64,000 bases of DNA. Origin: Paragordius varius. Taxonomy: Eukaryota > Animalia > Nematomorpha. Position numbers and translations under genes: made by a program. Below the pieces are notes generated by a model that was given only the letters and a program-made list of their open reading frames with translations, did not search any database and was not told the origin of the DNA. Below are positions 16,031-52,071 of this stretch, in pieces. The stretch covers positions 4,960,001-5,024,000 of the forward strand of contig OZ176052.1 in the NCBI GenBank assembly GCA_964247055.1, read 5' to 3'. Each line of letters starts with the position of its first letter. Position 1 is the first letter of the stretch.

Positions 16031-17326
16031 ATGACTTCACTCTCGTATCAACTACAAAAATTGCGACAGCCCCTAAATACTATTTTTAAGCCCGATGATA
16101 GGCAGAAGCCATCTATATTATTTGACAAGAAAGAGGCTGCCAGCTTAGATCGTGACATATTTTTTTCATTAGGTTTATACATAATTATAATTAGGTGTCA
16201 ATGGCCTTCAAGAATTGCAAGCTTTGGATGCTAGTTTTGAAGAATATGAAGATATACTTTTTTCTGAGGAAAATAAAAATTTTGAACGAATAATCGAAAC
16301 TAAGGCTGTAAACGATGAGATAAATGATGCGATTAATAAGTTTTTAATAACTCTTTCGCCTTATTTGCTAATTAAACCGTCTTTGCAAACCATTGAATGG
16401 CTACTTCACAGGTTAAATTTATTCTATATATTATAGATATCATATTCATATTTTAAATATGGATGGAATAATGCTATGTTCTCTGCCATACCATGATACA
16501 AATTATTTTGTCAAAATCATTCAAACATTTAATTTGGCTTCCAAAGCCGATCAACGAAATAAATGGTCCTGGCTTTTACAATTACAAAATAAAGGCTCGC
16601 CGCTTTCTAACTTGGATCTTTGCAAGCAAATGTGTGCAGATTCCATTTTTTTAAAATTCGTTTTATCCATGCCAGAAAAATTCATCAAAGTATATTTTGT
16701 TGTTCATTTCTTTATTGTGCATAATCTTGCTATTTTATTTTAATTATCAATTTACAAATAATTTTTTATCTCAGATTTTGTCAAATAATAATCACCGTTA
16801 AAGGCACACATAAACGGTAAATATATTCTGTCATTATTCAGATTAAAGACTTTTAATCATTTTTATTTAGTAAACCCATTTATTATTATTTTTTAAAAGT
16901 TTGATAGCTAGCCGTTTCATAAGAAAAATAATAACTTTCACTGATGTTTTTAAAAGTATGACTGTAAAACTTATTGACTTGTCAAATTATCTATATTTAC
17001 CATTTACAATTCAAATTTACTCTTAAACAATTCAAATTTACCCTCTAACGATATTCACCCTAAAAATAACGTGTTTAAGATTAAAAATTACTTTTATTTT
17101 TTATAAAATATGAAATTCTGTTTAAATTTAATATAATGCTGAAAAATAATAAACTATGTGCCAAAAATTTATTTCATATTAATGATGAGTTATATTAGCT
17201 CAAAAACGCGTAATTTATTTTTAGGGTGAATTTGAATTGTTCAAGGGTGAATTTGAATTGTTCAAGGGTGAATTTGAATTGTTTGAGGGTGAATTAATTG
17301 TTTTTGTAATTTAAAATGTAAATGGT

Positions 17327-17361
<35 letters not shown>

Positions 17362-20300
17362 CTATAAAACATAAAAAAGTTTATTAAATATATAATTTAT
17401 GAAGGTCCATGGATCAGATAACCCTAAGCTAAAAACTCTTTTCGGGTTTTATGCCTCATCAATGATAGGGTTTATTCAAATGGCTGTTCTGCAGGAAAAC
17501 TCGATTAGTGCCATGGCACCCTGTCTGGAGAAAGGTTTGAAATCACAAGATACTTTGTACATTCTTTCAACCTATGCCATTATTACCACGTTATCACAAA
17601 AAATTCAATTAACTGATGAATTTTGGCAATCAATCACTAAATTGATTTGCAAGGTAGTGAGATTTTTTTGGTTTTATTAAAATTATGAAGACAACCATAT
17701 TTTTGTATATTTTAGATTTTAAATATATCATATCGTTTTGGTTGGGTGCAAAAGGTTATTCACAATAATAATCATTTAGATTATTACAATTTTTAAAGAT
17801 CAAAAATTATTTCTTAGTTTTTTGTCTTCATAATTTTTGCGTTTATTATATGTATACAACTCTTTTATTTTAAGACGTAAATTAAATATTAATTAAAATG
17901 GAAAATTCTATAATTATGAATATATATTAATAGTCGGTTCTTTAATTTGCTTTATAAATTATACTAAATAATGGCTTATTGATGTTTTTATTATAACAGA
18001 ATTTGAATTGGAAATTGATCGATCACGCCATAAAATGCATTTTGAACATTGCTACCTTTCAAGATTCACAACAAATTTTTAATCGGGAGTAAATAATTTT
18101 CGATTTTTATATTAAATATTTTAAAGTTAATAAAAATTTATGTCAATCTGTATTTTTTATATTTTTTTGATTATTAATTTAGAAGTTTAGAAGCGTTATG
18201 GTATAATGCACCCCCCGAAAACCTAGCTTTGTTATATGACACGATTAGCGTTTGTAGTGAAAAAATTGATACATCTCCTCTTATTTGTAAACTCTTGCTT
18301 TGTAGTTTTAATCGCATGTTGGATATCGTTAAATCCTCGTATACTGATGTTATAAACAACAGCAATACAAATTCTAAATCCGATTTTAAAAGCATTTGCC
18401 AATCCATTTTAAATTTTATTTCTTCTCAACCATTGTCTATTTTTGCATGCTCTGTTCCTACAAGTGTAAAAGTTAATTTGAATCGAAAACGTAAAAAGAA
18501 AAGTAATACTGCCGTAAATGATGTATTGTCATCCAATGAAACTATGGATGTCGCAACTTTTACAATTAGGTATATTGGTTTTTTAATTTTTTTAATGAAT
18601 ATTTTTTTTTATTAAACTTTATACTTGTAAACAATACTATATTAATTGTTAATATATAGGAAACTCATAGACATCTACCTGAAAATCCACTCTAAAATTA
18701 TTCCCATTACACAAAGTAACCTTTCAAATGATGATGAATTAATTATACCATCAACAACTATTACATTAAAATTAATTTGCAAACAATTTGGTAAAATGTT
18801 AGGCACGCTTGATGCCTTATTCCCTGATACGGTGGAAAGTGTTTTAAACCATTATCTTAAACGTAAAAAGCACCATACTAACGATAAAAAACATTCTGGT
18901 CCTCTTGAAAAAATTATGACGCTCCTTACCTCGCCTAAATATAAGGTTTTTATCGATAATATCTATGTATAAAATATTGTTGCATGTCACAAGATATTAA
19001 ATTTGTTTTGTTTCCTCATTTGATTTATGGTAAAATCGTGAGAGTATTTTAATTAAAAGTATACAACTATGCATAATACAAGTTTTTAAAGTGTAAAGAA
19101 ATAAGTTTACGCATATATTTTTTAACCATGCTTATTTTTGTTTATCACTTTTAGATTATGGAGACGTCAGAAACTACTCATCCTGAAAATCCACTGAATG
19201 CGAGATTTCAAGAAGCAACGAAATTAATGTAATAGATTTTTTTATGAAATCATTGTTAATTGATTGATTAAATGTAAAATAAAACGTTTTATTATTGTAA
19301 ATTAGAAAATTACGATGAAAAGTATATGGCTAAATTTTTTTATAACCTATATATCTAAATTTTTATATATAAGAATAAAGTTTTTAACAAACTATTATAT
19401 GAAAAATTCTTATGTTGAAAATTATATGCCTATTTTTTAAACATATATTTTCATATAGCGAAAAATTAGATCTATGTCTAAAAGAGCTATTGGAGCCGAC
19501 CCTTGCAATATATAATGTTGCTAATGACATAATCCGATGTATTATGGATTTATTACCATATTTATACGCAAATGATAAAAACACCAACACTGATTATACT
19601 AACGTAGCCAATAAATTCATTCAATCAACCTTTTATCAGACGCACCCTATTATGCAAGGATTGCGTGAAAGTATAAACGTTTAAATGCTTTTTAGCTTAA
19701 TATGGCAAATATATTTCGTAAAATTGCTAATCTTTTATTTAACATTTCTAATCATTAAGGTAAATGGTCAACTCTCCTAACTACAAACCCTTCTAAAATC
19801 AATCCGACACAATGTAACTCGATCTTTACTCAAACATTTGCATCAAGTTTTATGAAATCCTTAGCAAAAAAAGAAATTTTTGAAATATTTTTACCCCAAT
19901 TTGTTGCCGATTTAAAGCATGCATGTTGTGCCATTTTTGATAACTTTTTTGCTCAAGAAAATTTTGATATGGACAAATTAACCACCATTTATAATCATAT
20001 TGAATTACTGAAACATTTATATGGATTATTAAATCAAGAATCTACTTTGCATGTTGAAAATTATGAAAATATTATTTTGACTTCATTGAACACCATTAGT
20101 CAAAGATTGTTGACCCTAATGTATAAATGGAAGTTTTGGGGTCACAAATTTAAAGTAATGATTTTACAATTTTATTTTCGTTTTCAATTTAATCCATTTT
20201 TAAATTAAATATTTACTATTAGAACATGTCTGTGGATACTCTTTACAAAAATGCATCCAGTCTGTACAATCAATTATTTGTTGAACATTTGTCGAATAAC

Positions 20301-23300
20301 AAAACTGACAATACCGAAAATCCTAAAGATGATGATAGTGATGGAAATATTGAAAAATCATCTCAACATGTTAATGAATTAGCAATACAAAAAATGTTAA
20401 TTGTTAATTTGTCCCAAATAATGGATATTATGGCTCAAAATACTTTTGATAAAAGTTTTTTTCCTTTAGAAATTATAACTTCGGGCCTTCAACATGACAC
20501 AACTCAGGATGAATTGAATCATTTAAAATGTGAACTCATTTATCAAATGTACAAGTTTTTAACGATTAAAGCAATACATGCCAATGTCAAAGGCATTAAT
20601 GAAATTGATTCGAATATCGAAGAGTTTAATTTGTTCTCTTGGATGTTTAAACATATATTTTTGGAGGTAAATTTTTTTGTGTAGATTTTTTTCTGTTGGT
20701 GTTGAAATCAATTTTTAGGACTTTTATTAAATAAGAGCGATATATCTTTTATAGTTTTATAAATTTATACATGTAATCAAACGTTTTAGATATTATTTAT
20801 GCAATACTTTTACAAATAAAATATATTTAAAATAATATTCATATATTTGGTTTTGGTTTAGAAATTAATTTTTGCGTCTTCGTCTGATATTCAACAAAAA
20901 ACATCAAGTATTCTTTCCTTTTCGCTATTCATATACACATATACTATGGATAAGAATGTGCATTCTCCGGAATCAAATAGACTTTTAATGCTTGTCACCA
21001 ATCATAACCTCTTCAAACTTTTGAATGATATTTCAAATCTTGATGGATTTGATTGGGAATTACGTATATATATGTTTTTTTTACATAATAATTAAAGAAA
21101 ATAGTCGTCGATTATTTGGAAATATATTTTTGTCAAAATTGTTAACATATTTTGAATGTTGTTGAAAATAATAAGAATTTAACCGTTTTGCTTTTGTAAC
21201 TTTCTTTTAATAGACATACGATTGCTTCTCAAAATATTTGATAAAACATTAGTATTATTTCAACTTTTACCTGTTTAAATTGTTATACATATTGCCATAG
21301 TTTTGAAATACATTTTGGTACAATTTATGTCACCCGATCATACAATACGTCTTTCTCTGCTGAAACATTTGCAAAGTTTTATTTCCTGCATCCCAAATCT
21401 CAACATTAATGAGAAAGCAGTCTTGAACGAAAGTTACAGCAGCGATAAAAGTCAGAAACGCTTAACATTTGAACAATTTACCAATTTTGCGAAATATGCT
21501 ATAGAAAACGAGGATAAAATAACGACAGAAGAAAATGGCATCTGTGAAGTAACTTATATTATTTAAATTAATCCATAAAAGTTAAGCAATTACTCCTTAA
21601 ACGAGTATAATCATGTAATAATTCAACAATACTTTAAAAGATATTTATATTTATATGCCTATTTTTTATATAAACATTTAAGGTACGATTATGTCTTATT
21701 TTGATATAGGTTGCCAAAATCTTACTAACTAATCGAGCGACTGAACATGCCCTAGCGAAAAAAGCAGCAAAACATCTATTTTTGCATCTCAAGAAAAGTT
21801 TTGCTTTATATTTTGAAAACAATCCATCCCAGTTTAACCGTAATGTTATGCTTTTGAATGCGAAACTCATGGGATTAGGTTCAAGGCTAACTAATGATCA
21901 GGTTTTTTTTACAACAAATTCAATTAATTTCTTTTTTAAATTATTCATTATTTCTCTGTTTTTAGTGGTACCTTGAATCATTTTTAATCCCTACCTGTAA
22001 TGCCGTGTGGAAAAACATAAAAACTACTGCGATTACAACAGATGATATAAGCTCTTATCCTAACTTACATGACGATAAGTGTCTTTATATGTTAACACAA
22101 TCGTTACAATGTGTAATGCGACACTTGGGTCATTCCCTAACCCATTTAAATAATGGGGACATGGGTGGCCTACTACCAGATAAAAAAATAGGAAAAACTT
22201 GTGAACTATTTGACTCTTTACTGAAAACCATAAATGAAATTATTGGCACATCTTTAACAATGTCTAATCAACCAATGCTTGAACATGATGAAAAGATGCG
22301 TAGGCGATTAATTATGATGTTTATGCAGTGCATATGTGATTCCACGGTATATTTATATTATTGAATACATTTTTTACCTAATAATACAAAGTTTTTTGTT
22401 ATGAAGTTTTAAATACGGACGAATTTGATTCATGATTATTTATTTTATTTTTTATATGTTAATTTTAATTTTTTTTTAGTTTTTATACCCATTATCAAAA
22501 TTTGCTTTGACTATTGATTCAAGCAATCAAGGATCGATTTCAAACTCAAATATCACCGCCAATATATCCTATCAAACAAAAATTACTTTTTTCATACACG
22601 TGCTAAAAATGGCTAATGTTTCATGTTCTTCTACAATAACGTCTGCACAAAATAATTATAGTGTTGGTGGTGGTGTTTTAACGCCACAATTTTTGTCGAA
22701 ACTCAAGTTGCGTAAAATTTTGATTAATTTGGTTTGGAATGAAACCAAACATTTTACATCTTTTGCTTCATTTTTCATTGGAAAAATATTTGGTTTAACC
22801 TCTGACATGGCTATTACGCTGGCTCGACGCAATTTTATGACAACTTATGATACCAGTAACATCAACAATAATGATAAAGGTTGGTTGAATTTTTTACCAT
22901 TTTTTTTGCAAAGATTATATATGACTTAAAAACTTTTTTCTATTAAAGTTAAAATACATACAATCAACCTGATTTAATGTTTTCTTCGTTATATGATGAT
23001 TTTTTTTGTTTTAGTGTAAGAGGTATTATATTAATGAGATTCGTATTAACGTCGTGAATAATGAAGGAAATAAAAATAAATTTATTAAAGACTCAAATTT
23101 TCGCCCAATGGCATCATCAGGAGTTGTTAAAAGAAAAAACTTTAAAATAAAGTACAACAAAGAAATTAATGTTTTTAGTTTTTAGATTTCATGCCGCAAT
23201 TAACCTATTTTTTCGACTCCTCATTTAAATTTTCCTTGCGAATCATCATTTAAATAAATTACAATTACTCAGTTTCAACATCATACACAATTCATCCATT

Positions 23301-26300
23301 TTTGTAAAAAGGCACAAATTGTTTAATTCAAAAATCCGTTGAGGGAGATAGATAAATTTTCTGTTGTTAGGCATTTTATAATGTATACTTAAACAAACGA
23401 AATTCGAAATTTAATCGAGATTAACTGTGATATTTATGTGTTTGAGATCATTATAATAAAATCAACGCAGATTTTTATTTCTTCTCTTGGTTTTAATTTT
23501 TTTCCACTAAGGTCCCCCAATTTATACGATATATCGAACCTCTAATTTTTTGTCTTTACCCCAATTTCTCGATACTCTATTTTTTTAGAATAATTCTTAA
23601 TTTATGCTAAAGCAGATCATTACAAAGCTTCTTTTCCAGCGTCAAAAGAGAATTTTTTTTAAAAAAAATCATTATAGTTATTTTTTGGCTATGAATATAA
23701 TTTAAATAAAAAATGCAAGTCTAGATATAGTTAACATATTCTAGCTATCTCAAAGTACAAGTTGGCAGATAAGCATTTAACTCACTCATTATAAAACCGA
23801 CTCATAAGGGTTTGAGCATAGATTGGATACAAATATAGTCAGCAGTAAACTTAAAATTATTGTACCCGGAAAATCCAGATTTTTAATTCCTTCTACTTAT
23901 GAAATAATGAACTCTTTTGAAAAGTTATAAAAAATTCTAATGCTTCCCTTGAAAATTAAAAAAAAACACTAACGACTAATTGTTCATTAATTTAATAAAA
24001 ATTATGGATAAAAAATGCCATTGCATAGCTACTTGTTTACTTTTAAAATCTTAATTAGGAATAAGGTAGTCCTATAATAAAACAGGAAAAATTGATAACA
24101 TTTTTTTAAAAAATTTGTGTGACTTATACAAATCAAGTAAATAAAAAGATAAATAAATCTACAATATCAATCGAACAATTAGGGCATTTGAAAATTAACT
24201 ATATCATTTGTTTTGGAAAATATTTTATATAACTTTTCATATATTTCTTTATTATTGTAGATTTATGGGAATCTTTTTTGTCCGTTTTAACCGATACAAT
24301 TTTAAAGACGTCAAATACCGAGACCGAAATTCAATATTTAGAATACATTCTCGAATTATTATACCAAGTTGCCTGTTCAAAAATTACAACGGCCAATTCA
24401 TTTATAAGCCTTAAAACATTATCTTTCCTTCAATCTATCATACCACCCATTTTTATTCTTTTAGATTGGTAAGAATTTTAATCATTAATTTACGGGTTAT
24501 AAAGCTTTGATAATTTAGTAATTTATTGTCAAAATTATTATCCCTAAATTTACCACATATTCATACTTGATATACTAGCATAAACGATAATTTACCCGGC
24601 GCCGACGACGAAAACTCATCAAAACCAATTATCCAAACACAAGATATGATTCTATTACAAAGACTCTGCCTTAAAATTCTACTTTCCTCGGTAGAACCAC
24701 TACTTTGCTTGAATGCTAATACACCAAGCAAGGTGATGCACGATAATTCTGACCATTGCATAAAATCTATTACGCTACTTATTCGTCATTCATTTCAAAT
24801 TGATACGTTGATTAAAATCCTCTTTTATATTTGCTGCTCTACCCCTAAATATGATACGCAAAAAATGGATATTAACAGCGGAAATTTAATAATGTGCCAA
24901 ATTAATAATTTCAATATTGATGTAACATACATCCGTCAATGCATTATACATATTTTGGCCTGGGTTGCCCCCGTATTCGGTGAAACATTGGTTCACAGCG
25001 TTTTCTCACTATTTACATTTATGGGAAAAACGGACATTCAAACGAGATTCGAGGATGAAAATGCAGTCATCAAGTATATTGACTTGGATTATTGCGTTTT
25101 TTTTTCAGAATTGAAAGCGGAATAATTTTAGTTGTTAAGGTTTTTGCCAATTAAAAAGGGTTACGTTATTTTGAAGTTTAAAAAAATGTTTTTTTTTCCT
25201 ATCTTTCTAACACCTTTAATCGTAATGATGGCGGCCTCTCTTTTATTTAATCTATGTATTTTTTTTTCAAAATTATCAGGAAAAAATGTAATGATAATAA
25301 ATTTTTTAAATTGAATGTCAACTTTTTTTGCCCATTTATTCACACTGGATCCAAATACTATCTTTGCATTTAAAAAAGAGAACCGGTAGAATCGAAACCA
25401 TTCAGAAATTATGTTTTTTGGATTTTTTTCAACAAAACTATGTATCTTGGGCTTATTATGCATTTTTGTTTTCAGGAGTAAAATTACCGATCAATTGGAA
25501 ATTGATAATGCGTACAGCTTTGAAACATTGGACAGTGTCATAGATATATTGATCCCTGCCTGCATAAATCAAGTTTTTTATAAATCAATAATTATACATA
25601 TAAGTCTTTTATATTTGTCAGTTTTAGTGTGAATCTACCTATCGATTGATAATTTTGATTACAATTATATTTCTTTTTAATTTCATATAGGCAGTTGTGT
25701 CCCAGAATTTGGCAAACATCAGTTTTGAAGACTTCACAAAAGCTTTGTTAAAGGAATCTGTAAAATATCTTTTGTGCTTTACGGATGCATTTGAACATAT
25801 ACCTTCCCACCGACGGATTCCTATATACTCAAATCTTTTAATAGTTTTGTCCGATAATATAACAGCCCAAGAAAAGTTAATTAAACGAAACCATATAGAT
25901 ATGGTGGGATCTCCTGATGAAAATACATTTGCACAAAGGGTTTATTATAATAAATATAAAACTGAATATTATTTTTAAACTGGTTGTATTCTATTTTACG
26001 ATTGCAGTATAATAAAAATACAGTGCTAGTTTTTCCTTAAATATGGATAGTATTTTGAATAAAGACTATTTTAAGCCATATTATTTTTTTACCTGTTGAT
26101 GTAAAACAAACAAAATATATTTTTATACATATCTTATAGAGTTCATTGCCAGACATGTTTTTACGATGGGCTTACCTTTTGCACTACCGACAACCTAATA
26201 ACAATAACATACTACCACAAGAAGTATATTATACTTTTTCCGATTCTTGTTTTTATAACATAAATCTATTTCAAACATTTTATATTAATATAAATCAATT

Positions 26301-26306
26301 ACAAAA

Positions 26307-26350
<44 letters not shown>

Positions 26351-29300
26351 TTTACAGTTCAAATCATCCTTGAACAATTCAAATTCACCCTCTTTCGTTT
26401 AAAATTATAATACTGAAAAATTAATAAAATATAAGAATATATTTCAATGATGAGTTTAGCTTGAAAACACGTAATTTATTTTTAATTTTGAATTGTTCGA
26501 GGGTGAATTTGAATTGTTTAAGGTTGAATTTGAATTGTAAATTGAATATATGTTATATATAGAATGTTTCATCGACTGCCAACGCTCATTGTATTGATTG
26601 CATAATAAACTTATGGGAATTACTAGTTTCACATATGCCTATCAGTGAGAACACTCTGGATTATGACTCAAAGTCTAAGTGTAAAATAGATTTTATGTAC
26701 CACGCCCTATCTAAACTCTTGTTTTATTTCATATTAAATACACATCGCACATGCAATACTACTTATGATATGGAGACAACAATGTCTTTAGAAGGTATTC
26801 CTTATATGACATTTTTTGATGCCTTTTTAAGGATTAATTCCATGTATCAAAAATTTAAATTTCAAATAATTTAATATATTTTTCATGTATAGATAATCTT
26901 GAATATACGGTTCTTAATGAGTTTGGACTTGTACCTGAAGCCAATCCTTTTAATCAAAATAGTTTTGGTGTGCTTATATATTTGGTTCATGTGTTGAAAG
27001 CAATCGTTTCCTCCATGAACCATGATATAGTTAACACAATTGATAAAACAAATAAGACATGGGTAATATATTTTAATGCATGTATGTTAGACAGCTATCA
27101 AACTATTTCTAGATTAGATATTATAAAATTTATTAATTATTAGAATTTTTTAGTTTTCTAATGAAAGTGTTGAAATTAACGCTATCGTAAATCTTTTATA
27201 TGATTTAATAGGAATAAAATATGATTTTTTTGAAAACTTCTTTGTATCAAAGACGGAATTTAAAACTATTTTTCCTTATAATATATGATTAGCATTAAAC
27301 CGTTAATACTACATTATCTGTTTGTGTATTACCTGTTTCAATAGCATTAGAAACTTTTTGTTATATTTTATACGTATAAATTATATGTTAATTTTATTAT
27401 TATGTGGGGAAATTTTTTAAGATATTAAATTTAAACCCGATATGAACAGAATCATGAATTTTAACTTAAATTATAGTTTTTTCCGTATCAATGATTTATC
27501 TTTAGCCTTGTCGATTGGATATATATAATGTTGAAACATTTGTAAAATGGAAAGTGTTATCATCGGTTAATATTTTATATTGATTTTCAAACTATGCAAT
27601 ATTTTAAGACTATAATATAATTATAACTTGTGTACTATTCATTAGTTATTATCATAATTATTACCTATTTATAATTTATTTATATCAAAATAATCTTCGG
27701 ATGCCACCAATATACATTTTGTTCTATATATGAAACTTTCTTAGATTAAATTGGTGAAACAATTGATATCCACATTACAACAAACATACTTCCTAATCCA
27801 TGAAAACTATTCAAACTCAATCGTAATAACTAAAGAAAAAAATTTGGCTCGGGACCAAAAACATCTTTTGATACAAATACTAACAATGCTTAAAACCATA
27901 TCTTTATGGATTAAACCGGCTACATTTGTTAAAATTATGTTGAAACTTTTTACGTCTGACAAAGACGAAAAAACGGTAATTTTATTTTTTAGGATTAACT
28001 CTCTTACTTTTTTATATGGTAAATTGTATTGTTTATATCATATAAATAATTGGAATTTTTTTGTTTTAAATATAAGTTTTTTCCCAAAAAATATACAATA
28101 AACCTTTTTTTCTTTTAGAGTTTATCTCCTGTTCAACAATATAATAGCCTTGATTTGCTTAATCATGTGTTTTCCACTAAAAGATACAATTCTCCTGATA
28201 TAAATATATATATTTCAGATTCTGAGGTAATTCTATATTTATCTTACTTAATAATCTTGTATAACTATATTTTTTGTAAATTAAAATACCTGATGATCAT
28301 TTTTAAGAATAAACAATAATCACAATGATTTACATATGCTTTATTCCAGTGTTTTCCAAAAAGGGGGACGCGAAAATTTTGAAAAATTCATTTAAATTAT
28401 AAAACTAGAAACAAATTGAAAGTTAATCTGGTGCAAATAATTAATGTTTATCCCCGATATGGAAAAGGTATTTCCAGAATTTCGCATCTGAGATCTTGAT
28501 TATGCTTTTTATAATATTATAATAATTTTTTTTCTCGGAGAAGTTGGTAGGGGGGCAAGAATTTCTTTTCACTTTGGTGGGGCGTGAACAAAAAATGGTT
28601 GGGAACCACTTAAAATTAAATATACAATTACCCAAAATTTTTATACTTAAAAAAATAAGATATTTGAATTATTTCTTATTTTCAGTTTTTAACCGTTGAT
28701 TATGATAAATCTTATTAATTTAGTGTAATATATTCTTTCTTCATTAATCTTCTTTATGATTTAAGCATCATTTGTATGTTAACAAACTTCTCCCATTTTT
28801 GATGGAAAAACTATCACACATTAATAATACAAGCTTGTGCGCCCTGCAAAGTAATGACATAAACGCACTCACAAATTATTCAAAACCGCAAATCAATGAT
28901 TTAGAATTTGATGTGGCATGCGCTCAATTATGTATTGTTACAATCAAACGTGTATTACAGTTATGTGGTATCGATAACGTTAATAATAATATGAATAAAA
29001 ATACGAAGAAAAATATCAATATTATCCCAAAAGCCAACCAATTAAAGGCTGAAATGATAGAAAAGGTATGTATTACATATATTTATATGTTTTAATTTAT
29101 CATTTTTTTTGAATATGGATATAAAGTGAGAAATTGTTTACATTGACTTTTTAATGTTTATAATGATGATTTGTGCGGTTTTTTATAGTTAGTTTTTAGA
29201 ATTTATATTAAATCATCCATAAGTCAATTTAATTGCAATTTATTTGTCTTTTTAGATCATTACCACAATATACGACACTCTTAAACGCCTTAATGAACTT

Positions 29301-32300
29301 AAATCAAAGGGATTTGATTCGGCACAAAATAACCCGGAAGTATTAGAAAATGTGATAAACAAATTAAAATCACTTCATTTATCTACCCTGCTGTGTTGTG
29401 CTGAATTGTTTTCCCATTGGCCATATCACGAGAAAATCTTATCTAATATACCATTGTATTTGGAGCCAACTATAGATTTACTAAGCCTTAATACACAGGA
29501 TGCTACAAAACAAGAACCGATTGCTACGCTAAAATTAGATAAAGTTTAATTAATAAATTATTATAAGGCAAAATATTATATATTTTCAAAAATGATTCAA
29601 TATTTTAGCTATTTATCACATTAATTTTATCAAATTTACCCATTGTAAAAGATAATAATACGTATCGAAACCTTTGGATATAGTGTAGTTTATTAATTTT
29701 ACAAAAATTCAATATATATCTTTTTTTTGTCTATACAGGAGAAATTATTACGATTAGAATGTGGAATATCATCCCTCGAAAAATATTTTTATCCCACAAT
29801 CAATCGGATTGCACAAGATGGGTCAATTGTTAACAATAATCCAGCTATCAACATTTTGTTAGGATCAGAAAATTATTTATCCTCGATCATTGTAAAGGTA
29901 AAAATGCCCAAATGCAATATTTTTAATGCTTAAAATTTTTTAATCTTCGTAATTTATATTATTATCGTGATTATAGTAATTTAGGATATATATTTAACCC
30001 AATACAATATATTTAATGACCACAGATATGTCAGGTAGGATTAGCTATTAGGAGTATTGCCAATTCGAATGCTGTGGAATTACGATTACAACGCTTAATT
30101 GTACTTCTCACCACTAAAGTTAGGATAGATTCTGTTCTGATGATAAAGGGATTTACTGAAGCCTTTGACACTTTATTAAAAAATGCAAGCTTTCACAATC
30201 AAAACGGAGAGGACAAAATCATGGAATGCCCTATCATATATTTCAAATTATTGAATAGGTATAATTCAAAATTTATATTTTGTACTTGTTGTTTAAATCT
30301 TATGGTATTTACATTTGATTTATTTTTGCATTTAATTTATTTTGAATATATATAGATATGTGAAATACAATGTTTTATTCAATAAATCCTTGTCATCTAG
30401 TCAAAATGAGACTTGCCAACAATTACAAATCGTTTTGGAGGCTTCATTTATAAATCAATGGTTAAGAATAGAATCGTTTATTTATGTAATATTTTCTCTT
30501 TTTTCTATATTATATATAAATAAATTTATTTTATAATGATTATGTATATATACTTTTTTAGTGCTTAGCAGAAAAGAAAGTTGTAAAATATATAACACAC
30601 CTTTTGACTGATACCCTGTTGCTATATTGTATGAAATTATCTGAAGAAAAATTATCATCATTTTTATCGAAAGTAAGATAATCAAATTTTACTATCGAAA
30701 CCATAAAAAAATTTCGAATTCAAAATGTAAATTTTTAAGTTTAAATCGCATCTACCAATAGCCTTTTTTTTAATAGAAAAATAATATTTTTATCAAAGTT
30801 GTTTATATATATTAGCTTTATTGTTGTTTTTACATTATTGTTAATTATGTATATTTTTCATATTTTTTTCCAAGAGAAAAACAAACATTAAAGTTTTTTA
30901 GCGACAAAATATATAAGAATTTAAGCATATTGTCCACCTTTTTATTTTATGAATTTTCTCGGAAATAGAACAAAAACCGGTTTAATTCTTTTAAATACTT
31001 TATTTATAACTAAATAGAAAAAAAGGATTATTGTTTTTGCAAAATACATAAGTGTCAAATATATTGATTAGCTATCAATCTGGTGGTCTTCAGAATCTGA
31101 ATGTCAAGAAAAAAGCGAACAACAATTATTTGACGCACAGATATCAACTTGGAAAGATAATATAATGCTTTCATTTTGCCTTAGATTGATTCAACATTTG
31201 GATAAATTGTTTTTACTTTTCTCGCATGTTTGGACGGAACCCTTGCAAGCCATGTTAGAAGGTAAAGTTAACTAAAGTTGTAAATAAAATTTAATTAAAC
31301 TATATAATTCTTTTATAACAATATTTTTTGTTGAGGCTCAACAGTTATGTTTAAATATTTATTGCATCTGAGTTCAGTTTTTCAAAAAAACGAATAATAA
31401 TTGTCGTTGTTTTTAAATTAAAAATGATGTATATGTATGTTTATATTAAATTATCTCCTATTCGATATAAAAATTTAGCATTATAAATATTTCTCTTTTG
31501 CATTAGCTTTGCCAAACATTAAAGATGAGGGAACCAACCAATTGCTCATTTTAATTGATATCTATGGTGCAATTCTTAATTTGGAAGAAAAAAATAATAT
31601 GTCAGAAACGAATACCTCAATAAATGAGATCCCATCTTTACCTCGATTTTTGACAAAAATTTATATTCAAGACATCCTTTGGACCTGTATTAAATTAGTA
31701 AGTTATTAACGTATATTCTTATTGGATAATTGTAGTTGGTCACATAAATATTGACTTTTTCTATTATATATTATCTTTATAAACATTATCAGTAACTCTT
31801 TGGCTAGGGCTCATTATCCGCTGCTTGACCTTTTATTGCTAATCTTTATTTTGATATTTTATATGATAATATTTTAGCCACTAAGTAGTGAAAAGGAATA
31901 TTTACATTTTTGCGGTCTGAAAAATATATTAAAATCGTAAATTAATAAATAGATTAATAATGGTTCGACGAGATGTCCGTAAGTTTAAGGTTTTTCGTCT
32001 AATTAGCATGAGTTGATTAATTTTAAATTCTTCTTATTTAAGAGCTTATTTGGGATTATGTCACACAAATATTAATATTTAACTAGTGTGTTACTACTAA
32101 TTTGTTTAAATATATATTGTTAATTTCCGATTCAATTATGTTTTTACCATGAATGACTCCATTTATGAGCAGGTGGAATGATAGACAATTTTGACCTCTT
32201 CAAATCAAAATTTTAATATTTTTTATTTAATAGTTCGATTCGATTAAAGAATATGAAAGTGAGTCATTAGATAAACTCTATTGTTTGATCGCTTCAATGA

Positions 32301-32978: not shown

Positions 32979-33033
32979 GCAAGAATATTTTGTATTCCAT
33001 TTTTCATCAATCAAGTTTATCATTCATCTAAAT

Positions 33034-34531: not shown

Positions 34532-34589
34532 CCAACTTATTTAATTTGATGGAACCTCTAAATTAATTTTTTGGATCTATCATTTGAAG

Positions 34590-36337: not shown

Positions 36338-37392
36338 TTCCACATCAAACTAGTTTGACGCCATTTTTATTTTACAGCATTTATGAAAAATACCGTTTAT
36401 TTTTTTATAATAAATCAAAGCAATTTATTATTTAAATCAACATAAAACATTGATAATTACATAAAACATTGATAAAAACAGAAAAAGTGCTTTACTTTGT
36501 ATTATTAAGTTTACCTAGAGCACGCATGTCATTTTAAAATTGTTACCTTCGGGTTTTACCTTAAAATAAATAAAAGAATTTTAATTTTTATTTTTTGGTT
36601 TATTAATGTTATATAAATGCAAACTTTTGCATGGTTTGCATATTTTTTGAAGTATTTAATTTAAACAGGCCGGGGATATGCAACTACTCCAATATAAATC
36701 GAAGGACTGAAATGTATGTGTTGTATCCAAGTGTTAGTACTATACGATTCAATTCTGTTTTAAGGCTGTCCTTTTTTTCTAGTCCAAAACTGTAAAATTA
36801 AACGCGTTTTTCTGTATGACAACAGCGGTTGATATTTTAATAACCAAACAAATTTTCAAAAATGTGGTTAATGAGATATAAAACTACCAAAGGTATACTA
36901 GGTCAATAAAGTGAAAAGGTCGAACCCTTAAAAAACAACACACTATGGAACCTTAACACATTTATTTTTTTTCAGCAGAGGATAATGTAAATTCCTAGTT
37001 AAGAATAATATCATAATATACCCTACTAAAAATCTGTTGAAAAAATAGGTAAAGGAGATTTGATTTCGTACTGCGTCAGGTTTTAAAATAGGTCACATTA
37101 TTTTTATGTGGAATATTATATATTGTTATAAAAAAAGTTATTAATCGGATTTGTGACGTCTCAAACCTTGGCGTGTTTTAATCAAATATATTTTTAATTC
37201 TCGGGGCCCTCCCTCTTAAATTTTAATTTTTAGAAAGTTTTTAAAAGCAGGTATCGTAAAAGAATTTTAATTATTTATATGAAAAATTTCCCGTAAAATA
37301 ATTAAAATAAATTTTCAAATAAAAAAATTATAAATAGGCATTTTTTTAACTTATAACAATAATATTATTGTACATTCACAATCACATTCAAA

Positions 37393-39204
37393 ATGAAAAA
37401 GGTTTATTACCAATCTTCAAGTAATTATATAATAATAAACAGATAATACGCCTGAATTTAATCAAAATCGAAAAACCTCTCCCGAAAGATTTACATCCAA
37501 ATTAAATCCGGATGCTAAAGAATTTAATCCTTTCGGAAATGTAATATATATTTTATATATAAAGGTTAAGAAACTAAGTTTGGAAGATATCGAAGGTATG
37601 ATTCATTAATATGTTAGATAAACTGCGAACTTATCTCAACGATATGACTATTGATCCCGGCACATTTTCTGAGCGAGCTCTAACTATTTATACTCTTATC
37701 AGATGCCAACCAGATATTTTACAACATCTCTTGCGACTAATCATTTCATATGTAAATATTATTAAAATAATATATAGATGAATGGTAGTCAAAGCTGTTT
37801 ATATTGTGGAGCTAAAATATTAAATTATTTGATTAATGAATTACCTATCACACAAAGTCAAAATTTAATGAATATTTTGGAAAATGAGTAAATTTAAGGG
37901 TAATATATAGAATCGGAAATATGTATGATTCCACAATTAACTTAGATGTCAATCAAAAGGAAAACGTTAAAAAATTAATTGATTTAACCTATTTAATAGC
38001 TGAACTATTTTGTAGGATTGAGGTAAATCGTTTAAAATGATACGATAGACAAATATAAATCAAGCCCTATGCTTAATTTTATTAATTTATTTATTAAAAT
38101 TTAACATATGGACCCATTCTTTTCTTTTAAAAGGTAAAACCAATAATCATTGTTTCATTCTGTAAACTGGTGAAACATAGTTATTTATTGATATAAGAGT
38201 GAAGCTAAAACCAAACACCGATTAAGGCTTAACAACGTTTTATATTTTCATTTCTTTAAAATTAAATATAACTTAATGATTTTTTCGAAACGAAAAATAT
38301 TATATAATCCAAATTCCTTTTTTTATACTTCTTAAAATTTATAAACAATTTTATGTATTTGCATCCTTATATGTCATTAATACGTTTACACATCGTCAAT
38401 AAATTATCTATTTTATAAGCCCATTAAAGGGAAACCTATAAAAGTGAAAAACCCAATGTTTTACGAAGCACTCATGGAATTACTTGAAAAAATGATGGTT
38501 CCGCCATATATTGAAGATTTTCTAATAAATTCTACAAAAATTTTGAAGGTAAAACCTAGTGAATTAATTATATGTAGTATAATGCATACAAATATTATAA
38601 TAATATCAAAATTTCAAATTTTCTGTCACCTTTTTTTAGTTATCTGGGCACGAAATCACGCAGTTTGAAGAACAAACAAAGCCCCCACCTGACGGTAACA
38701 CTCCATTTAGACCGTCACGCTTCAACAATTATATGGCAAAAGTGCGAGAACTTGTACTTAGTGAAGGCATGATTCAAAGGTTGCTATAATTTTATCTATC
38801 CATTTATACAGGGATGTCTAACACAAATTTCTACGCGTGCTGCTTTGATAATTATTAGTTTTTCAATTTATTTTAAGCCCAATTTTGGATGATGTAATCT
38901 ATGAAAATCGTAAAATTTTGATGAATTAGCAATTTATTAATTTTAACATTTTCAGAGCACTTTTTCGACCTTAACAAAGCGTTTAAGGTAATATTGACAG
39001 TGGTTGACCTTACCTCATTGAGGCGCCTTTTTTAATTTAACATTGGCTAAAAAAGATTTGTTGTTTACCGATCATCATGCGTTTTTCCCCTTTTTATAAT
39101 GGTCTTATTTTTCGTTATAATTGTTCCCAATAGTTTTTGGTAGCCCCATGATGAACCAAAAACAAAAATAAATAATATAATATTTTTAAATACCCATGTT
39201 ATTA

Positions 39205-44945: not shown

Positions 44946-47900
44946 TTACATATCATTTCCAGGATAAATGTAAATGACAGGTATATAATTCTTGTAAATT
45001 ATATTGGCGTTTGATTTACCATTTTTATCACTATTTTCGAGCGGTGTAATTTCATTACCATAGTAGCAAAATATATCAGGTTTTGGGATTTGAAGTTTAC
45101 CCAAAGTCAAGGGTAAAAAGTTGTATGTGTAATCTACGTATCGGCCCGGTCCAATCACAAAAGAGTTTGATTTTAAATCACTTGTTTGAGATTCCTCAAC
45201 AGAATTGTTGTTTATAATTCCTTTACATCCTGCAAATATTAGGGTTGGTTGTTCCGACATACTAATTTGACATTTTACATGCTCAATCAGCGATGTATTA
45301 TACAATCGATAGGTTATATTTATCATATCATGAATGCGAAACCATGACGGTTTTACAATTTTTTTATTATCATAGCTAGTAAACGTAACGCTATTTTCTT
45401 TTTTTGGTCGTGTATCTGGTTCAATGGTTTGTTCAAATGTTTTATTGCCCAATTGAAATGTATTGTTAATTAAAATGTCGACTTCGACAGTAGATCTATT
45501 ATTTAAGCTATCGTCTATAATATCACATTTCAAATCAAAATAGGCATTTGTCAAAAATTGTTTTCCATTATTCTTATTATTATTATCGTTTGTTTCTCGA
45601 TTAATCTTAATTTTTTGCCAACCAATCTGAACATAACCAAAATTTCGAACATTTACTTTTTCTGTTAAATCAAACTTATTTAACATTAGTAAAAAAGTAA
45701 ACATTTCACCCGGGTTCAAAACGTTTGGATGAAAACAAGCTGGATATATTTCGGTAGATATTGATTGATTATTATTATTATTGCCAATAAAATTAATGGA
45801 GTTTATTGCAATGGATGAATATTTATTGTTGGCTTCAAACTTATCATAACATACGGTGTTATTGTATAAGTTTACAATAAATATGGCTGGCCAATGATTT
45901 ATATGAATTTGTTTTTGCAGAGAAGACTCCTTCATCGGTATAGTTTGCGGTGTTAAATGTGATGTGAATGTTTGCTGCTGAAATGTTAATTTAAACTGTT
46001 TTAAAAGGTTAAATCCATCAATCTGCGATTCCCACATGTAAGGAACATTAATTGGATTGTTGGTATTTAATTTGTCATAACTTAAACGTACAAGAAATTT
46101 GTATTGTTTTACGGTCCAGTCTGTATTACAAACATGGTCGGCATCATCATTCATCACATACATAATTTGATATGGATGTTCCATTTTCATACGCATTTTA
46201 AAACCAAGTTGTTTTGGCATCTCAGTAAATGATGCGAAACCAGCCGTATATGACGAGGAACAAGAAGACGTATTTTCAACGGGTTCCAATGTTAAATCAT
46301 AATTAGAAAAAATGAATTCAGGAAATACATTTAAATTTTTATCAGTATGCCTATTGATCGGGAAACATTCAATTTTTATTTGAATGTTTGTAATATGTTG
46401 TTCCAATACTAAATTCTCCGTTGGCATTATCTTTAAAGACCAATCATTCTCTTCATCTACCAAGACATTGGGTGTTTTGTTAGAAAGATTTTCAGAATTA
46501 CTACTGAATTTAAGAGTGAAATCTTGGCCAAAAGGAAATAAATTATTACTATCTGCTGGCTTAAAATTAAATGGAAGGAATAATAGCATTTTATTGGATG
46601 AATGGTTTAATTCATTGTTCACCAAATTGCAATATTGAATTGGGTAATTTTTTGCTAGAACACCACCAATGTCTGATAAATTCCATGTCAAAGTCAATGG
46701 TAAATATTTTAAGGCATTACCGTGTTTGGTCATAACTTCATCTTTCACGATTATTTTTATACCCGTAATTTTTAGGATACCTAACAAATCAATAGCATTA
46801 TTTATGGTGTGTAATTCTGATATTGCATTTTGAGAACTTAAAATTTTCCATATGTGTAAACCGTTCAGCGCAATTAACTCAATTTGTTCTTCCCTATTAA
46901 AAATGTATTCCCAGTGCCCCTTAAGGTTATTAACGCATTTCTGGTCGGATGACAATCGGGTAGAGTAATTACGCAAAACTGTGCTAAGAGATGTATGATT
47001 TTCTGCTTGCAGTTTGACAAAGTCAATTTCGTAATTAATTATAAGTTTTCCTATCATTTGTATAAGGGCATTTGGGTAAAAGTCTAGCGTCTATATAATA
47101 CAAAAAAATATATATTAAAATTTCGATAATATGGGAAAGGATGACATATAGTTAATTTTTTCAATTTTTACTATTATTAGCCAAAAAATATCTTTGCTGC
47201 ATATGCTATTTGGCAATAATTATTGAAAAACTAGCAATGTATACTAACTCATACTCTATAAAAAACAAAGGATTAAAATTCTTTGATAAAAAAATACTTA
47301 TAAGTTTGTTTTTTTAACAAATTTATTTTTACTGTCCTTATACCATTTGGTCTTTAAATGAAAATTCGCACGCAATATCAAAATCATTGTATGCCATTTG
47401 TGAGACGTGGATTGAAAGCTTAAAGTTTTGACATTGATCGGATAATTCGTCCATGAGAATACAAATTGGGTTAGGTTGTGGGACTAAAGGGCAGATCTGA
47501 TTATTTGTGTGAAACATCGTATTTTTATATGATTCCATTAATGATTTCCACTGGGCATTTATAGACGTATTTTCACTCGATAGGATACCTATTTCTAATG
47601 TCATCAAAAGGGTTTTTTAAATAAAATCAAATTATTATTCAAAAATGTGCATGATTCAATTTCGGTGTGGTTGTTTAGAACAAAAATAATAGATTTCAAT
47701 GTTTTTTTTTATAAAAAAAATAACCTAAATCTCGCTATTACTTTTTGCTAATATAACTAAAATTGAATTTTAACCATAATTTTGTGTCAATGGCAATACA
47801 TCAAGAAAAACAACAATTATAATAAATTATTATTTAAAAAATTTAGATTTCACCAACCTGAAAAATCAAAATTTGGAGGGGATCCACTTAAAACATTCGT

Positions 47901-50900
47901 TAAATAAGTGTAAATGAGAGTTAATTTAACATTTTTTGCATTTGCGTCCACCAAACCCAAGAGTTCAAACGAGCATCGGATAAAAAGGGGCAAATTGATT
48001 GAGAGGATAGCGCATCTTAAAGAAAATGATATATCTAATTTCTGGGATTAACTTATATCTAATAATTTTTTATTATAATGTTATAAAAGCTAGTTAATTA
48101 TATTATAAAAACATACAATACTTGTATAGCATTTCAATTAATAGAACATAAATTTTATTCCAAGTGGAATGTTTCAATGACTCCAAAATTGAACATAATA
48201 AGTTTATGCAGTTCGACAAATCACCAACGCGAAAATATTGTTCTGCTAATTGGTATTTAAGCAATCTTATCAAATGCTGACTATGGAATTCGTTGAAAAT
48301 GGTTATCGCCCTAAGGAAAAAGTCATAAAAATAATATTAGTAGAATCGTATCCCTTTTCTGATCAATTTACTATATTTATTATTTTTTGCCATAAAAATC
48401 ATAAATTTATCGAATTTAAAAACGAGAACATGTCCCTACTTTCATGTTATTAATTAAAATATAATTGTACACGATTAAACAAATATAGCTACGACTATTG
48501 GTTAGATAATTAATATTTTTTACTCATTTAAATTTTGAATGATGATGGATGTCATATCAAATTTCAACACATTTAATTGCAAAGCTAATGTACCACTCTT
48601 TTCACGTTGCATGTCAATATGTTCGGCATTAAGATTCCCTGGTCGCCATGGCCTCTGTCCATAAAACTCCATTTTATCGATTCCTTTTAAACATAAAAAA
48701 CACAATATACGCCATACAAAAGGTAAAAACTGAAAGCTCTTTTATAAACCTTGTTATCTCCAACATAAACCATATAAGTACAATTATAAATTTATGGAGT
48801 GTTACAAATTTATATTTCTATTCCTTAATTTGCAATTTATATTGTTAAATGCAATTAACAGTAAATAAACGATAAAAGAATGTGGATCCATAAAACAAAT
48901 TTTTAAGATAAAAAATTATTTAAAATTTTTATAGAAGAAAAATAAGTAAAAACAATTTTTTTATTATGACTTTCTTTCATTAATACGTATCAGCATGGGC
49001 ATGTTTAAGCATTTATAGGTTCTTAATACAATTCATTACAATAATGAAATAAAAAAATAAACATTAAAATTACTTGCATCGATTCTTTATTTAAAAGTTA
49101 AATTTTTCCAAAGGTATAAATACCATCAACTTTGTAACTTTATTATTTGAAAAAGACAGTCATTTACTGTCGAAATATGATATAATTATTTCATTTCTTT
49201 ACGCTGTTGTTTAACTAAACGTAAATTTATTCCTAACCAGATAAAAGATCCATAGTTTGCGGATATAAAACATTGCTAGCTAATAAATTCTTATGTTCCT
49301 CTTGCCATTGCTGTATTAATTTGGCTTGTTGGGCAGCTTGCATAAAATAATGTCCAGGATGATAAACGGTTTCCATAGAGCGCATCCCCTGTTTACTCAT
49401 GGTTTTGTATAGCTTAGCAAACACTTCGAATCTAAATATACAATGGCATCCATGTATGTTTTAAACTGATTTTTTTAGAGAAATCGATTTAATGCTAATA
49501 TGTTATTTTTTTATTTAAGAGGAGAAAAATATTTTGGGTAAGTTTTGCTTTAACATTTATTTATTGATAATTTAGAGATTTAATGAAAAATATGATCGTA
49601 GTAGTCATAAGATGTGATGCGATTGATATCTTGAAAATATATAAAAACTATTTTTGAAAATGCCAAATCTTACAAAACAAAAAGCAAAATGAAAATAAAA
49701 CAAAATATAGAAAATATACTGATAATATAGCCAGAAACTATTTTCAAAGTCTAAATCAGTATTCTCTTTCAAAACACTGTATTGTTCGATGTGCTTGTTG
49801 AATGCAGTTAAAGCATCTTTTATCATATTTTTGTCCAACAATATTTTACAAATCTGGCATGGAAAATATTGAAAATATAATTTTAGAATCAAATATATTT
49901 GGATTCATATATTAATATTTTTACTTTAAAATTGATTAGGGCGGAGATAATTTTGATTTCGTGTATTGTTGTTTCCGCAATTTTGACATCGGAAAGAGCT
50001 TCATAAGCTTGAATATAACTCCTAATATATACATATATATAAATAATTATTATGCGTGTTATATATATATATTTGGAGCCTAGTTTGCTCTTTTAAAAAA
50101 TTAGTTTTATGAATGATTTTTCGAAATCTGAAAGAGGATTAAACGTCATAAGCGATAAATCATTTAAAAAAATAAAATGCGCCCAAATAAAATATCAAAA
50201 TTTATCATAAGATTATAATTATATGTATAAATCATAAACTTAAATATTAGTTTAATCAAGCGTTATTAGGGTTTAGATAAAAAATTCAAACATGTTATGG
50301 ATGTGAAACATTGGCGAAACTGCAAATGAAAGTGAATAAAGATTGTTTATACATTTTTTTATAGAGATGGTATACACATAGAGCGTAAATATAATAGCTG
50401 TAAAATTATTTTTAATTTTAAGGTGTTCATACTTTGAAAAAGTATTTCTAATTTTACTGGTAGTTAAGTTAGTAAAAAATTGGCCCGCGATTAGGTATGA
50501 TTAAACTTTGACATTTTTTTTAAAAATTATATAGATGAACATTACGATCTGCTGCAACATATCATATTAATCAAATTTGAAAAGAGTTTAAATAAATATT
50601 TCATGGACAATGATAATCAGATAATGGTTTCGACTTTATAAATTATTTTAAAATTGCCAATATTATAGGTATTTGAAAATTCCTTTGAAGCATATATACA
50701 TTAAAGTAATAGTAATTTATATAATTTACAATACTTAATAGCTAAGGCAGGTTCTTGTTTCAATTCATTGAAAAATCCTATCTTGAAATGGTATCGAACC
50801 AATAAACCCTAAACGATTGTTATGCAATAACTTGATGAACGGATTTATCCAAGGCTGAAATATGGATTTTTATGTTTTTGATTTTGTCATTGTAGTAAGT

Positions 50901-52071
50901 TTGGGCAATTTCAAAAAATGCATTTTCCAATCTATTAACATATTATCACTAATTAAAATATTTTCATATTATTGAAACGCAATTAGATCTAACATAGAGA
51001 ATATCACATGCTATAACAAAACAAAAATAATGTATGGTTAAACAAGGGGTATATGCGATTTAATATCGTTCAAGATTATTTAATTTCAAAAATTTTGGTT
51101 TTTAGTTCCATGATTTTTGGTTTGGTGTTTTGCGGTTATTTTAAATTTGCAAAAAAATAATTATGTGTAGAATATAAATAAATAGCCACAAAAGTAGGTA
51201 GCTACAAAATATATTATTTACTACTTTCCCATGTAAAATTTAAAAAACAAACTTTTATGATTCAAATAAATATTAAATAAATATATAAGATTCATTGCAT
51301 TAAAGTGAAAAAATGATACAATTCCAAAAAATAATTTTTCACACAAAAATCCAATAAAAACGGGATCGAAAATTGTTTTGCTCCCATAAAAACGTTCAAA
51401 GTCAATACACAAAATTAAATATTCAAATTAAAGGTATAATTTCTACTTTAGCGTGTATCCATAAAATAAATCGGAGAATGGCAAAATAAATAAATTTTTG
51501 GATGATATGTTTAACAAATCGCAAAACTCAGAGGCTCGTTGAGACATTAAATTTTCTTCACCTTATTATAGAAGTAAAAGATATACCTGGTGGGAAATGG
51601 GAATTACTTTGTATTAAAACAACTACCAATTTGACAAATCTATTATTTAAAGTTTCTCTAAAGAATTAACGGTTTTTGTAACTTGATGATATTAAATCGT
51701 GTATTACATTCCATTTTCTTTTCATCCCATGATACATCATTCCAATCAAGTTCATAAAAAAATACTATTAAACTGGGAATGATTTCAAGATGTTTTATTA
51801 TCCAATTTCTCTTTAACATACCCTTTGGTATGTACCATTCAAAACTATTTCGCTGAAATTTACATAAGAATAATTATACCTGTGCATGAGGTGTCGGAAG
51901 CCTGTGATCCAGGGCACAAATTTTAAAATTAATCGCTAGCTGATTCTGCTTTCTGTGCATAAAATATTCCCATATAGCTTTGTGATTTGCATTATATACA
52001 ATGTCTAAACCGGTTAGATAGACAGGGATATCGGGTGGCAAAAAAAATTCCTCAGGTATATAAAAATCCAT
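44946..52071 (-). CDS. TRAPPC11: Trafficking protein particle complex subunit 11 (TRAPPIII; foie gras/gryzun), about 14 exons
   Basis: LTGLDIVYNANHKAIW, RNSFEWYIPKGMLKRNWIIKHL, FYELDWND, RLENAFFEIAQTYY, RYHFKIGFFNELKQ, EIKIISALINFKIC, HPGHYFMQAA, EFYGQRPWRPG and SLRCAIL...FELLG match recalled TRAPPC11. The last exon (47090-44946) contains the 703-aa ORF with the C-terminal Gryzun-like region (YNFLPLTLGKLQIP). Confidence 0.93.
50809..51879 (-). other. Four ultra-short introns in TRAPPC11 (27, 25, 25, 23 nt)
   Basis: 51879-51853, 51682-51658, 51586-51562, 50831-50809; each removal restores the conserved TRAPPC11 frame (the 27-nt one contains an in-frame TAA). Confidence 0.9.

Follow-up and report, generated by a model that had tools for sequence, protein, structure and literature searches.

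The window analyzed here is a 64,000-nucleotide (nt) stretch of Paragordius varius DNA (G000:C3:4960001-5024000), taken from an assembly of 110.6 Mb in 44 contigs (26% G+C) that represents an animal genome rich in introns. A search for nematode SL1 RNA found none in it, nor in the control genomes, and is therefore uninformative about the organism. Three genes in the window are at issue: an ortholog of HEATR1/UTP10 (16031 to 32925, + strand), the 5′ part of a PAIP1-like gene (37393 to 38022, + strand), and an ortholog of TRAPPC11 (44946 to 52071, − strand). An earlier note on this DNA had claimed that each of them contains tiny introns and that such introns occur only near the 5′ ends of genes. 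All 11 tiny introns claimed for the three genes proved to be GT-AG segments of 22 to 27 nt, the excision of which leaves stop-free reading frames. As far as sequence can show it, the comparisons reported below identify the tiny segments as GT-AG spliceosomal introns of ordinary appearance that lie within about the first 650 coding nt, usually among the first one to five introns of a gene.

Tiny introns in HEATR1, the PAIP1-like gene, and TRAPPC11

HEATR1 comprises about 38 exons, ends in the C-terminal sequence GEPLQKYF followed by a stop, and has tiny introns at ordinal positions 1 and 2 alone. Tiny intron 1 (16173 to 16194, + strand; 22 nt, GT..AG) lies at position +142 of the coding sequence (CDS), which is also its genomic offset, and tiny intron 2 (16412 to 16436, + strand; 25 nt, GT..AG) lies at CDS +359 and genomic +381, in agreement with the sites of about +140 and +380 given in the note. 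Exon-by-exon alignment to solved ortholog structures placed exons 1, 2, and 3 on residues 1 to 46, 50 to 119, and 121 to 201 of human HEATR1 (7MQ8 chain LM). Human residue numbering is contiguous across both tiny introns, two split codons included, and therefore both segments appear to be excised exactly. The later introns measure 64 to 806 nt, and the claim that none of them is shorter than 64 nt held for every later intron needed by gene models run without a tiny-intron bonus. Short extra introns arose only when that bonus was combined with tiny flanking exons, and they were treated as artifacts.

The 5′ part of the PAIP1-like gene consists of six exons of 28 to 134 nt that are separated by five tiny introns, all on the + strand: 37421 to 37442 (22 nt, CDS +28), 37541 to 37564 (24 nt, CDS +126), 37596 to 37617 (22 nt, CDS +157), 37752 to 37777 (26 nt, CDS +291), and 37888 to 37910 (23 nt, CDS +401). 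Their genomic offsets of +28 to +495 fall within the claimed span of +28 to +520. Removal of all five yields a joined frame of 513 nt from the ATG, or 171 codons, with no stop. The name PAIP1 was taken from a PAM2-like motif alone, SKLNPDAKEFNPF, and is not confirmed: Pfam was blank for the exons tried, and exon-by-exon searches of the PDB were blank for exons 4 to 6.

TRAPPC11 begins with an ATG at 52071 and ends in a last exon that is an open frame of 714 codons (47090-44949). Its first three introns are tiny (− strand): 51853 to 51879 (27 nt, CDS +192), 51658 to 51682 (25 nt, CDS +362, genomic +389), and 51562 to 51586 (25 nt, CDS +433, genomic +485). Intron 4 (50932 to 51446, − strand; genomic +625) is 515 nt and stands ahead of a further tiny intron, intron 5 (50809 to 50831, − strand; 23 nt, CDS +648, genomic +1240), which was placed by frame logic only. 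All four tiny introns were found where the note had put them. Exon 1 aligns with residues 8 to 66 of fly TRAPPC11 (7B6H), with five more residues unaligned, and exon 2 aligns with residues 72 to 121, such that numbering is contiguous over three tiny introns in all, two in HEATR1 and one in TRAPPC11. An exon-wise Pfam search found a Foie-gras_1 domain in the TRAPPC11 exon at 48106-48336; Pfam was blank for most exons of this gene, and the PDB was blank for exons 5 and 6 searched one by one. Homologue searches with HEATR1 exon 3 and with the 714-codon TRAPPC11 exon gave no matches, and Pfam was blank for those exons tried from HEATR1 and from a DDX11-like gene discussed below.

Four DNA-like runs, some of which differ by many single-nucleotide polymorphisms, carry the tiny introns uncut, TRAPPC11 tiny intron 1 being uncut in all four. 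Two tiny introns have length variants of 3 nt between the assembly and other DNA runs: an additional ATA at window position 51567 gives a 28-nt allele of TRAPPC11 intron 3 in four of four runs, and an additional ATT at 50819 gives a 26-nt allele of intron 5 in three runs. As the tiny introns are uncut in runs that diverge in sequence, they are stable genomic features rather than assembly errors.

Two further claims concerned genes that do not conform or were left unnamed. FAM20B had been cited as a counterexample, and a FAM20-family gene (ATG 14952, − strand) indeed has a first exon of 597 nt followed by a first intron of 76 nt at CDS +597 (14280 to 14355, − strand), with a Fam20C domain found by exon-wise Pfam search in the downstream exons at 12502-12777 and 10701-10997. 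The tiny intron reported at about +870 of an "orphan gene" was not located in the window.

Position of tiny introns along genes

A gene model was applied to 324 kb of sequence that comprised the window, 200 kb of adjoining DNA, and nine CCT chaperonin loci, the last recovered when the organism's own genome was searched with a Pfam family, which gave exon-by-exon matches with profile coordinates. The model was trained on the Pfam-anchored CCT exons and HEATR1, and its tiny-intron channel of 18 to 40 nt received an equal bonus at every position. Under lenient settings, the model yields invented micro-exons and in-frame "introns," and so filtered introns alone were counted: both flanking exons had to be at least 45 nt and the intron had to be needed for the frame, which left 30 genes and 180 usable introns. 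Two of the 30 modeled "genes" are retrotransposon copies with artifactual short "introns," and neither supplied a counted tiny intron. Two other approaches were dropped. A self-trained hidden Markov model (HMM) gene finder (256 kb) either fused everything together or detected next to nothing, since coding and noncoding DNA are too alike in composition, and a count of GT..AG bridges between open reading frames had a background, set by control dinucleotides, that equaled the signal.

A gene finder could invent tiny 5′ introns in order to reach a start codon, in which case the pattern would be an artifact of modeling or of a small sample. The model did make spurious short "introns" at 3′ ends, in a retrotransposon open reading frame, and within the 714-codon TRAPPC11 exon. 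The key cases, however, are anchored by ortholog residue numbering or Pfam coordinates rather than by the model, the filter on exon length and frame stands between such calls and the count, and a reversed-sequence control of the gene model contained no genes. We consider the artifact largely refuted and scarcely credible.

Introns of 30 nt or less accounted for 12 of the 24 usable introns at CDS positions 0 to 200, 4 of 28 at 200 to 400, 1 of 25 at 400 to 700, and 0 of 103 beyond +700. The bias toward 5′ ends was supported by a Mann-Whitney test (p = 5e-9), and when labels were shuffled within genes, the observed sum was never reached in 100,000 trials (p < 1e-5). The 17 tiny introns, about 10% of the 180, had a median CDS position of 159, a maximum of 596, and an ordinal position of at most 3; the corresponding median positions were 961 for the 24 introns of 64 to 100 nt and 984 for the 134 longer introns. 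Median intron length was 181 to 406 nt in each CDS bin past +200, and the tiny class is a minority. A separate short mode is present in the length distribution and is enriched near the gene start, with 15 introns at 20 to 29 nt, 4 at 30 to 59 nt, and 17 at 60 to 79 nt. 

The 5′ bias that the earlier note had drawn from four genes therefore holds, far past chance, in the larger sample of 324 kb and 30 genes. The note had called for a genome-wide plot of intron length against position; the counts by CDS bin over 324 kb showed no even spread of tiny introns along genes. The interval from 28 to 63 nt, which had been described as empty, is instead a trough that contains introns of 28 and 36 nt (CCT_F), 29 nt (CCT_E), 30 nt (FARSA-like), 57 nt (CCT_C), and 61 nt (CCT_A), all near 5′ ends. 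Likewise, the separation by position of two length classes, beyond what uniform compaction would give, extends past the original four genes, but it is looser than was claimed in that a tiny intron can follow a long one and 5′ introns are often not tiny.

Individual genes gave the same picture. Pfam-anchored junctions in the CCT genes, at which the coordinate delta is 0, gave introns of 26, 57, and 71 nt at HMM positions 20 to 25 and of 188 to 1248 nt elsewhere; in one subunit, a 26-nt intron at profile position 20 is followed by one of 607 nt, and in another, a 57-nt intron at profile position 23 is followed by one of about 1190 nt. CCT introns read by eye measured 28, 36, and 24 nt, and the CCT gene models have first introns of 23 to 84 nt and later introns of hundreds of nt. 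Listed in order, the introns are 24, 71, 73, and 287 nt in TCP1-alpha; 27, 28, 36, and 461 nt in CCT-gamma; 283, 67, and 30 nt and then 332 nt in a FARSA-like gene; and 23, 22, 24, and 21 nt and then 809 nt in a DDX11-like helicase, the first of which (23 nt) splits the Walker A motif between ESPTGT and GKT. The joined N-termini of TCP1-alpha and CCT-gamma match the canonical proteins, and the DDX11-like protein is presumably collinear with its orthologs around Walker A. Tiny introns are commonly adjacent, five in a row in the PAIP1-like gene, four in the DDX11-like gene, three in TRAPPC11, and two or three each in CCT_D, CCT_F, and CCT_G.

Searches of further family tables returned profile coordinates without sequence, such that intron sizes are uncertain by the overlap of profile matches and some "gaps" fall inside one open frame; clean cases were used. 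Clean tiny junctions of about 28 nt at profile position 88 (HSP70) and of about 25 nt at position 34 and about 23 nt at position 97 (Arp) were found in this way, and across the HSP70, actin, adaptin, class I tRNA synthetase, myosin, and proteasome tables such junctions were confined to low profile coordinates. At least one tiny intron was present in 12 of the 14 homology-recognizable genes examined. Standard gene finders whose minimum intron length exceeds 30 nt will get the first exons wrong in a large share of the genes in this genome.

The tiny introns range from 19 to 30 nt with a mode of 22 to 26 nt, and GT..AG boundaries were present in 26 of 26 in a wider set. Tiny, intermediate, and long introns share one splice consensus; the tiny ones start with GTA or GTT, end in (T/A)AG, and have a G+C content of 17%, a base composition much like that of longer introns. 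Removal of the tiny introns restores frames that are collinear with orthologs, as seen in the HEATR1 and TRAPPC11 exon alignments and at the CCT Pfam junctions. One use for such introns could be regulatory: a retained tiny intron would introduce an early stop or a frameshift and act as an on/off switch or as a trigger of nonsense-mediated decay, which would be sensible only near the start of the frame. All counted tiny introns would break the frame if kept, this being itself a criterion of the filter, and the haplotype length variants are multiples of 3 in both cases. Length modulo 3 is nonetheless unbiased among tiny introns (10:9:7), and the genes concerned are housekeeping genes. We regard regulatory retention as very unlikely.

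Origin of the tiny introns and limits on intron length

The joined TCP1-alpha gene-model protein was compared by local tblastn with three contigs, and hits were taken per exon. In the animal contig L053, TCP1-alpha introns at residues 23, 52, and 96 measure about 88, 73, and 190 nt, and the introns at the same three positions here measure 24, 71, and 73 nt. The 24-nt intron thus occupies an ancestral position and therefore arose by shrinkage of an old intron and not by a new insertion. More generally, the tiny introns look like shrunken ancestral introns, with at least one at an ancestral position. A second contig, L054, is a scaffold of a Sphagnum microbiome metagenome (27% G+C) and appears as an AT-rich animal contig; in its TCP1-alpha gene, the exon for residues 96 to 164 is bounded as it is here, and the intron at residue 96 is 464 nt. 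Micro-animals in metagenomes, such as the source of L054, could serve for intron comparisons.

The length data are marked by two lower limits, as 5′ introns reach down to about 20 nt and downstream introns pile up from about 57 to 64 nt. Past CDS +700 there are 13 introns of 64 to 100 nt, out of 24 of that size overall. The downstream pile-up near 60 nt, set against about 20 nt at 5′ ends, favours, without proving, a splicing limit that depends on position. One way in which such a limit could arise is if the minimum tolerated intron length varied with how far the intron lies from the transcript's 5′ end. Close to the cap or promoter, introns between short exons would be recognized by intron definition, possibly with help from the cap-binding complex or from RNA polymerase II in early elongation, and introns much shorter than the customary minimum of about 60 nt would be spliced. 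Farther downstream, the ordinary mode alone would be at work. Deletion pressure would then drive each intron down to the floor valid at its position, and many downstream introns would grow to hundreds of bases instead. Whether a 5′-proximal splicing mode of this kind, based on intron definition or coupled to cap or promoter, explains the tiny 5′ introns is, in our judgment, almost an even question, and we put it forward tentatively. A stricter form, in which the spliceosome has two position-dependent minima, one of 19 to 30 nt that applies up to about 0.65 kb from the start codon, possibly coupled to the cap or promoter, and an ordinary one of at least about 60 nt, is a conceivable but rather unlikely reading; were it true, the same tiny intron would be spliceable or not by its position in the transcript alone.

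The cap-binding complex stimulates the splicing of cap-proximal introns, as established by work in yeast and mammals in the 1990s, and the present pattern resembles that effect in that the spliceosome treats the 5′-most intron differently. To our knowledge, however, the effect concerns the efficiency of first-intron splicing and not minimal length, and it is not known to extend as far into a gene as about 650 nt or the fifth intron.

Alternatively, the pattern could reflect a mutational or selective gradient and no special splicing. Insertions, tandem duplications, and transposon fragments would gather in gene bodies but be kept out of promoter-near regions or removed from them, for instance through chromatin-dependent integration or selection that favors compact 5′ ends, such that 5′ introns alone stay at a deletion-driven minimum. 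Consistent with a gradient, intron length climbs along genes, as in TCP1-alpha and CCT-gamma above, and long introns hold tandem and dispersed repeats, for example GGGTGAATTTGAATTG units at window positions 17200-17300 and AGGGTGAATTTGAA, which has 29 copies in the 324 kb. Repeated 14-mers nevertheless cover just 0 to 3% of the long introns sampled, a small sample, and recent repeat insertion is not evident. Moreover, a gradient leaves unexplained why none of the 103 introns past CDS +700 is 30 nt or less when 13 of them measure 64 to 100 nt, as if at a second floor. A shortage of insertions at 5′ ends would not in itself keep tiny introns from occurring downstream, and a splicing constraint is favored on that account. 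We doubt that a gradient alone is responsible but give it a real share of the probability.

A third possibility is kinetic, namely that tiny introns are slow to splice and are tolerated wherever much transcription remains, that is, far from the 3′ end rather than near the 5′ end. The fully modeled genes with tiny introns are indeed long units, at 17 kb for HEATR1, 7 kb for TRAPPC11, and about 4.4 to 5.5 kb for the CCT genes. The part of HEATR1 from +700 to +10 kb, however, has many kilobases of transcription still ahead of it and zero tiny introns. We consider the kinetic explanation improbable.

Several observations weigh against a splicing mode restricted to 5′ ends. Tiny introns also occur after long ones, in TRAPPC11 (after 515 nt), in the FARSA-like gene (after 283 and 67 nt), and in CCT_E, and therefore distance from the cap in the pre-mRNA is no clean predictor. 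Numerous 5′ introns are 57 to 84 nt or long, as in CCT_A, CCT_H, the Adaptin gene AP-f, and a proteasome gene on C9. Two candidates for short downstream introns came from the profile coordinates of the family tables: one of 14 to 32 nt at profile position about 313 of a myosin gene (C5:4360286-4360301, − strand) and one of about 51 nt, in frame, in an adaptin gene (C4:12087981-12088397, − strand). Distances were measured from the ATG and not from the transcription start, the sample is 324 kb out of a 110-Mb genome with nine genes from one family, and excision of the tiny introns is deduced from the genomic sequence, the covering runs being DNA-like. Finally, the mechanism itself is something we infer, and a mutational gradient combined with selection could yield a similar picture.

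As tiny introns can follow long ones and many 5′ introns are not tiny, the data do not say that 5′ introns are tiny but that tiny introns are tolerated nowhere except near the 5′ end. The rule that fits best is that the first 650 nt or so from the start codon are the only place where introns of 30 nt or less are permitted, and that introns of at least about 57 nt occur everywhere.

Berriman et al. in 2009 reportedly described for Schistosoma mansoni 5′ introns that are smaller than 3′ introns, the smallest being about 26 to 50 nt. Multimodal intron lengths are found in Opisthorchis felineus and other trematodes, for which the authors suggested that introns near the 5′ end of pre-mRNAs are recognized by intron definition (Ershov et al. 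2019, PMC6530080). The introns here resemble the microintrons of Opisthorchis and other flatworms in multimodal length, 5′ clustering, and adjacency, but the short peaks in Opisthorchis are at 37 and 90 nt, with "micro" defined as below 75 nt, whereas the mode here is 22 to 26 nt and a second lower limit lies near 60 nt. A short mode of about 32 to 37 nt, as in flatworms, was absent here, where the mode just given lies within a range of 19 to 30 nt. Gyrodactylus salaris has two short modes of about 32 and about 58 nt, of which the shorter dominates intron positions 1 and 2 and the longer dominates positions 3 and above, the cause being left open (Hahn et al. 2014, PMC4040987). The two short modes and the preference of the shorter for the first ordinal positions recur here; mean intron length, however, drops with ordinal position in G. 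salaris and rises steeply after the first few introns here.

Among 51 genomes compared, introns below 30 nt were found only in Dicyema japonicum and myxobolid myxozoans (Hadjez et al. 2026, PMC13644364). The present case is likewise one of spliceosomal introns below 30 nt in an animal. In Dicyema and the myxobolids, however, the tiny class is the genome-wide median of compact parasite genomes, whereas here it is a minority confined to 5′ ends and most introns are hundreds of bases long. A tiny class that forms the majority or the median, as in Dicyema, Myxobolidae, and ciliates, was thus not found, at 17 of 180. We conclude that 5′-clustered micro-introns are already published for flatworms and that they are combined here with a class below 30 nt that is a positional minority.

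An intron of fewer than 30 nt approaches the length at which, for steric reasons, its 5′ splice site and branch site could no longer be paired within a single spliceosome. In animals, such introns have been reported only from genomes in which nearly every intron is tiny. As tiny and ordinary introns here occur inside the same genes and are sorted by position, each gene serves as its own control for the splicing of a 22-nt intron. Should the limit truly change with distance from the 5′ end, it would open a direct way to study cap- or promoter-coupled splicing and would also account for the 5′ clustering of micro-introns in flatworms.

Repeats and variants near the genes

The tandem repeat in the HEATR1 intron at window positions 17200-17300 is built of the unit GGGTGAATTTGAATTGTT, which is dispersed as well (L003, about 260-315; L005, about 5578-5612) and has a 14-mer core with 29 copies in 324 kb. 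The unit contains both GT and AG, and gene models were misled by it into micro-exon calls. 

Two features were seen in other introns of TRAPPC11. In the last intron, contig depth over window positions 47100-47299 was about 100-fold or more above that of neighboring bins in the three deeper runs, and there were an opposite-strand joint at 47134/47229 and many loose ends. The excess depth and the opposite-strand joint suggest a very high-copy element, which is probably of inverted-repeat type, like a miniature inverted-repeat transposable element. At 48034-48079, the assembly and other DNA runs differ by a 44-nt deletion replaced by ATT, which would cut a 106-nt intron to 65 nt.

The retrotransposon copies noted above lie at L007:1777-4455 (+ strand) and L014:1206-4397 (− strand), 70 kb apart on opposite strands. 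They are near-identical non-long terminal repeat elements that encode an endonuclease and a reverse transcriptase with the motif FADDTTLIAES. Between HEATR1 and the PAIP1-like gene, the gene-poor interval at window positions 33000-36600 contains transposon-like frames on both strands, (TA)n runs, and repeated CGCGACCCCA motifs. A 42-nt satellite occupies positions 56567-64000, to the end of the window, in at least 178 copies with a 91% match; it has a strong strand asymmetry, being C- and T-rich on the + strand, and gives rise to long spurious open frames.

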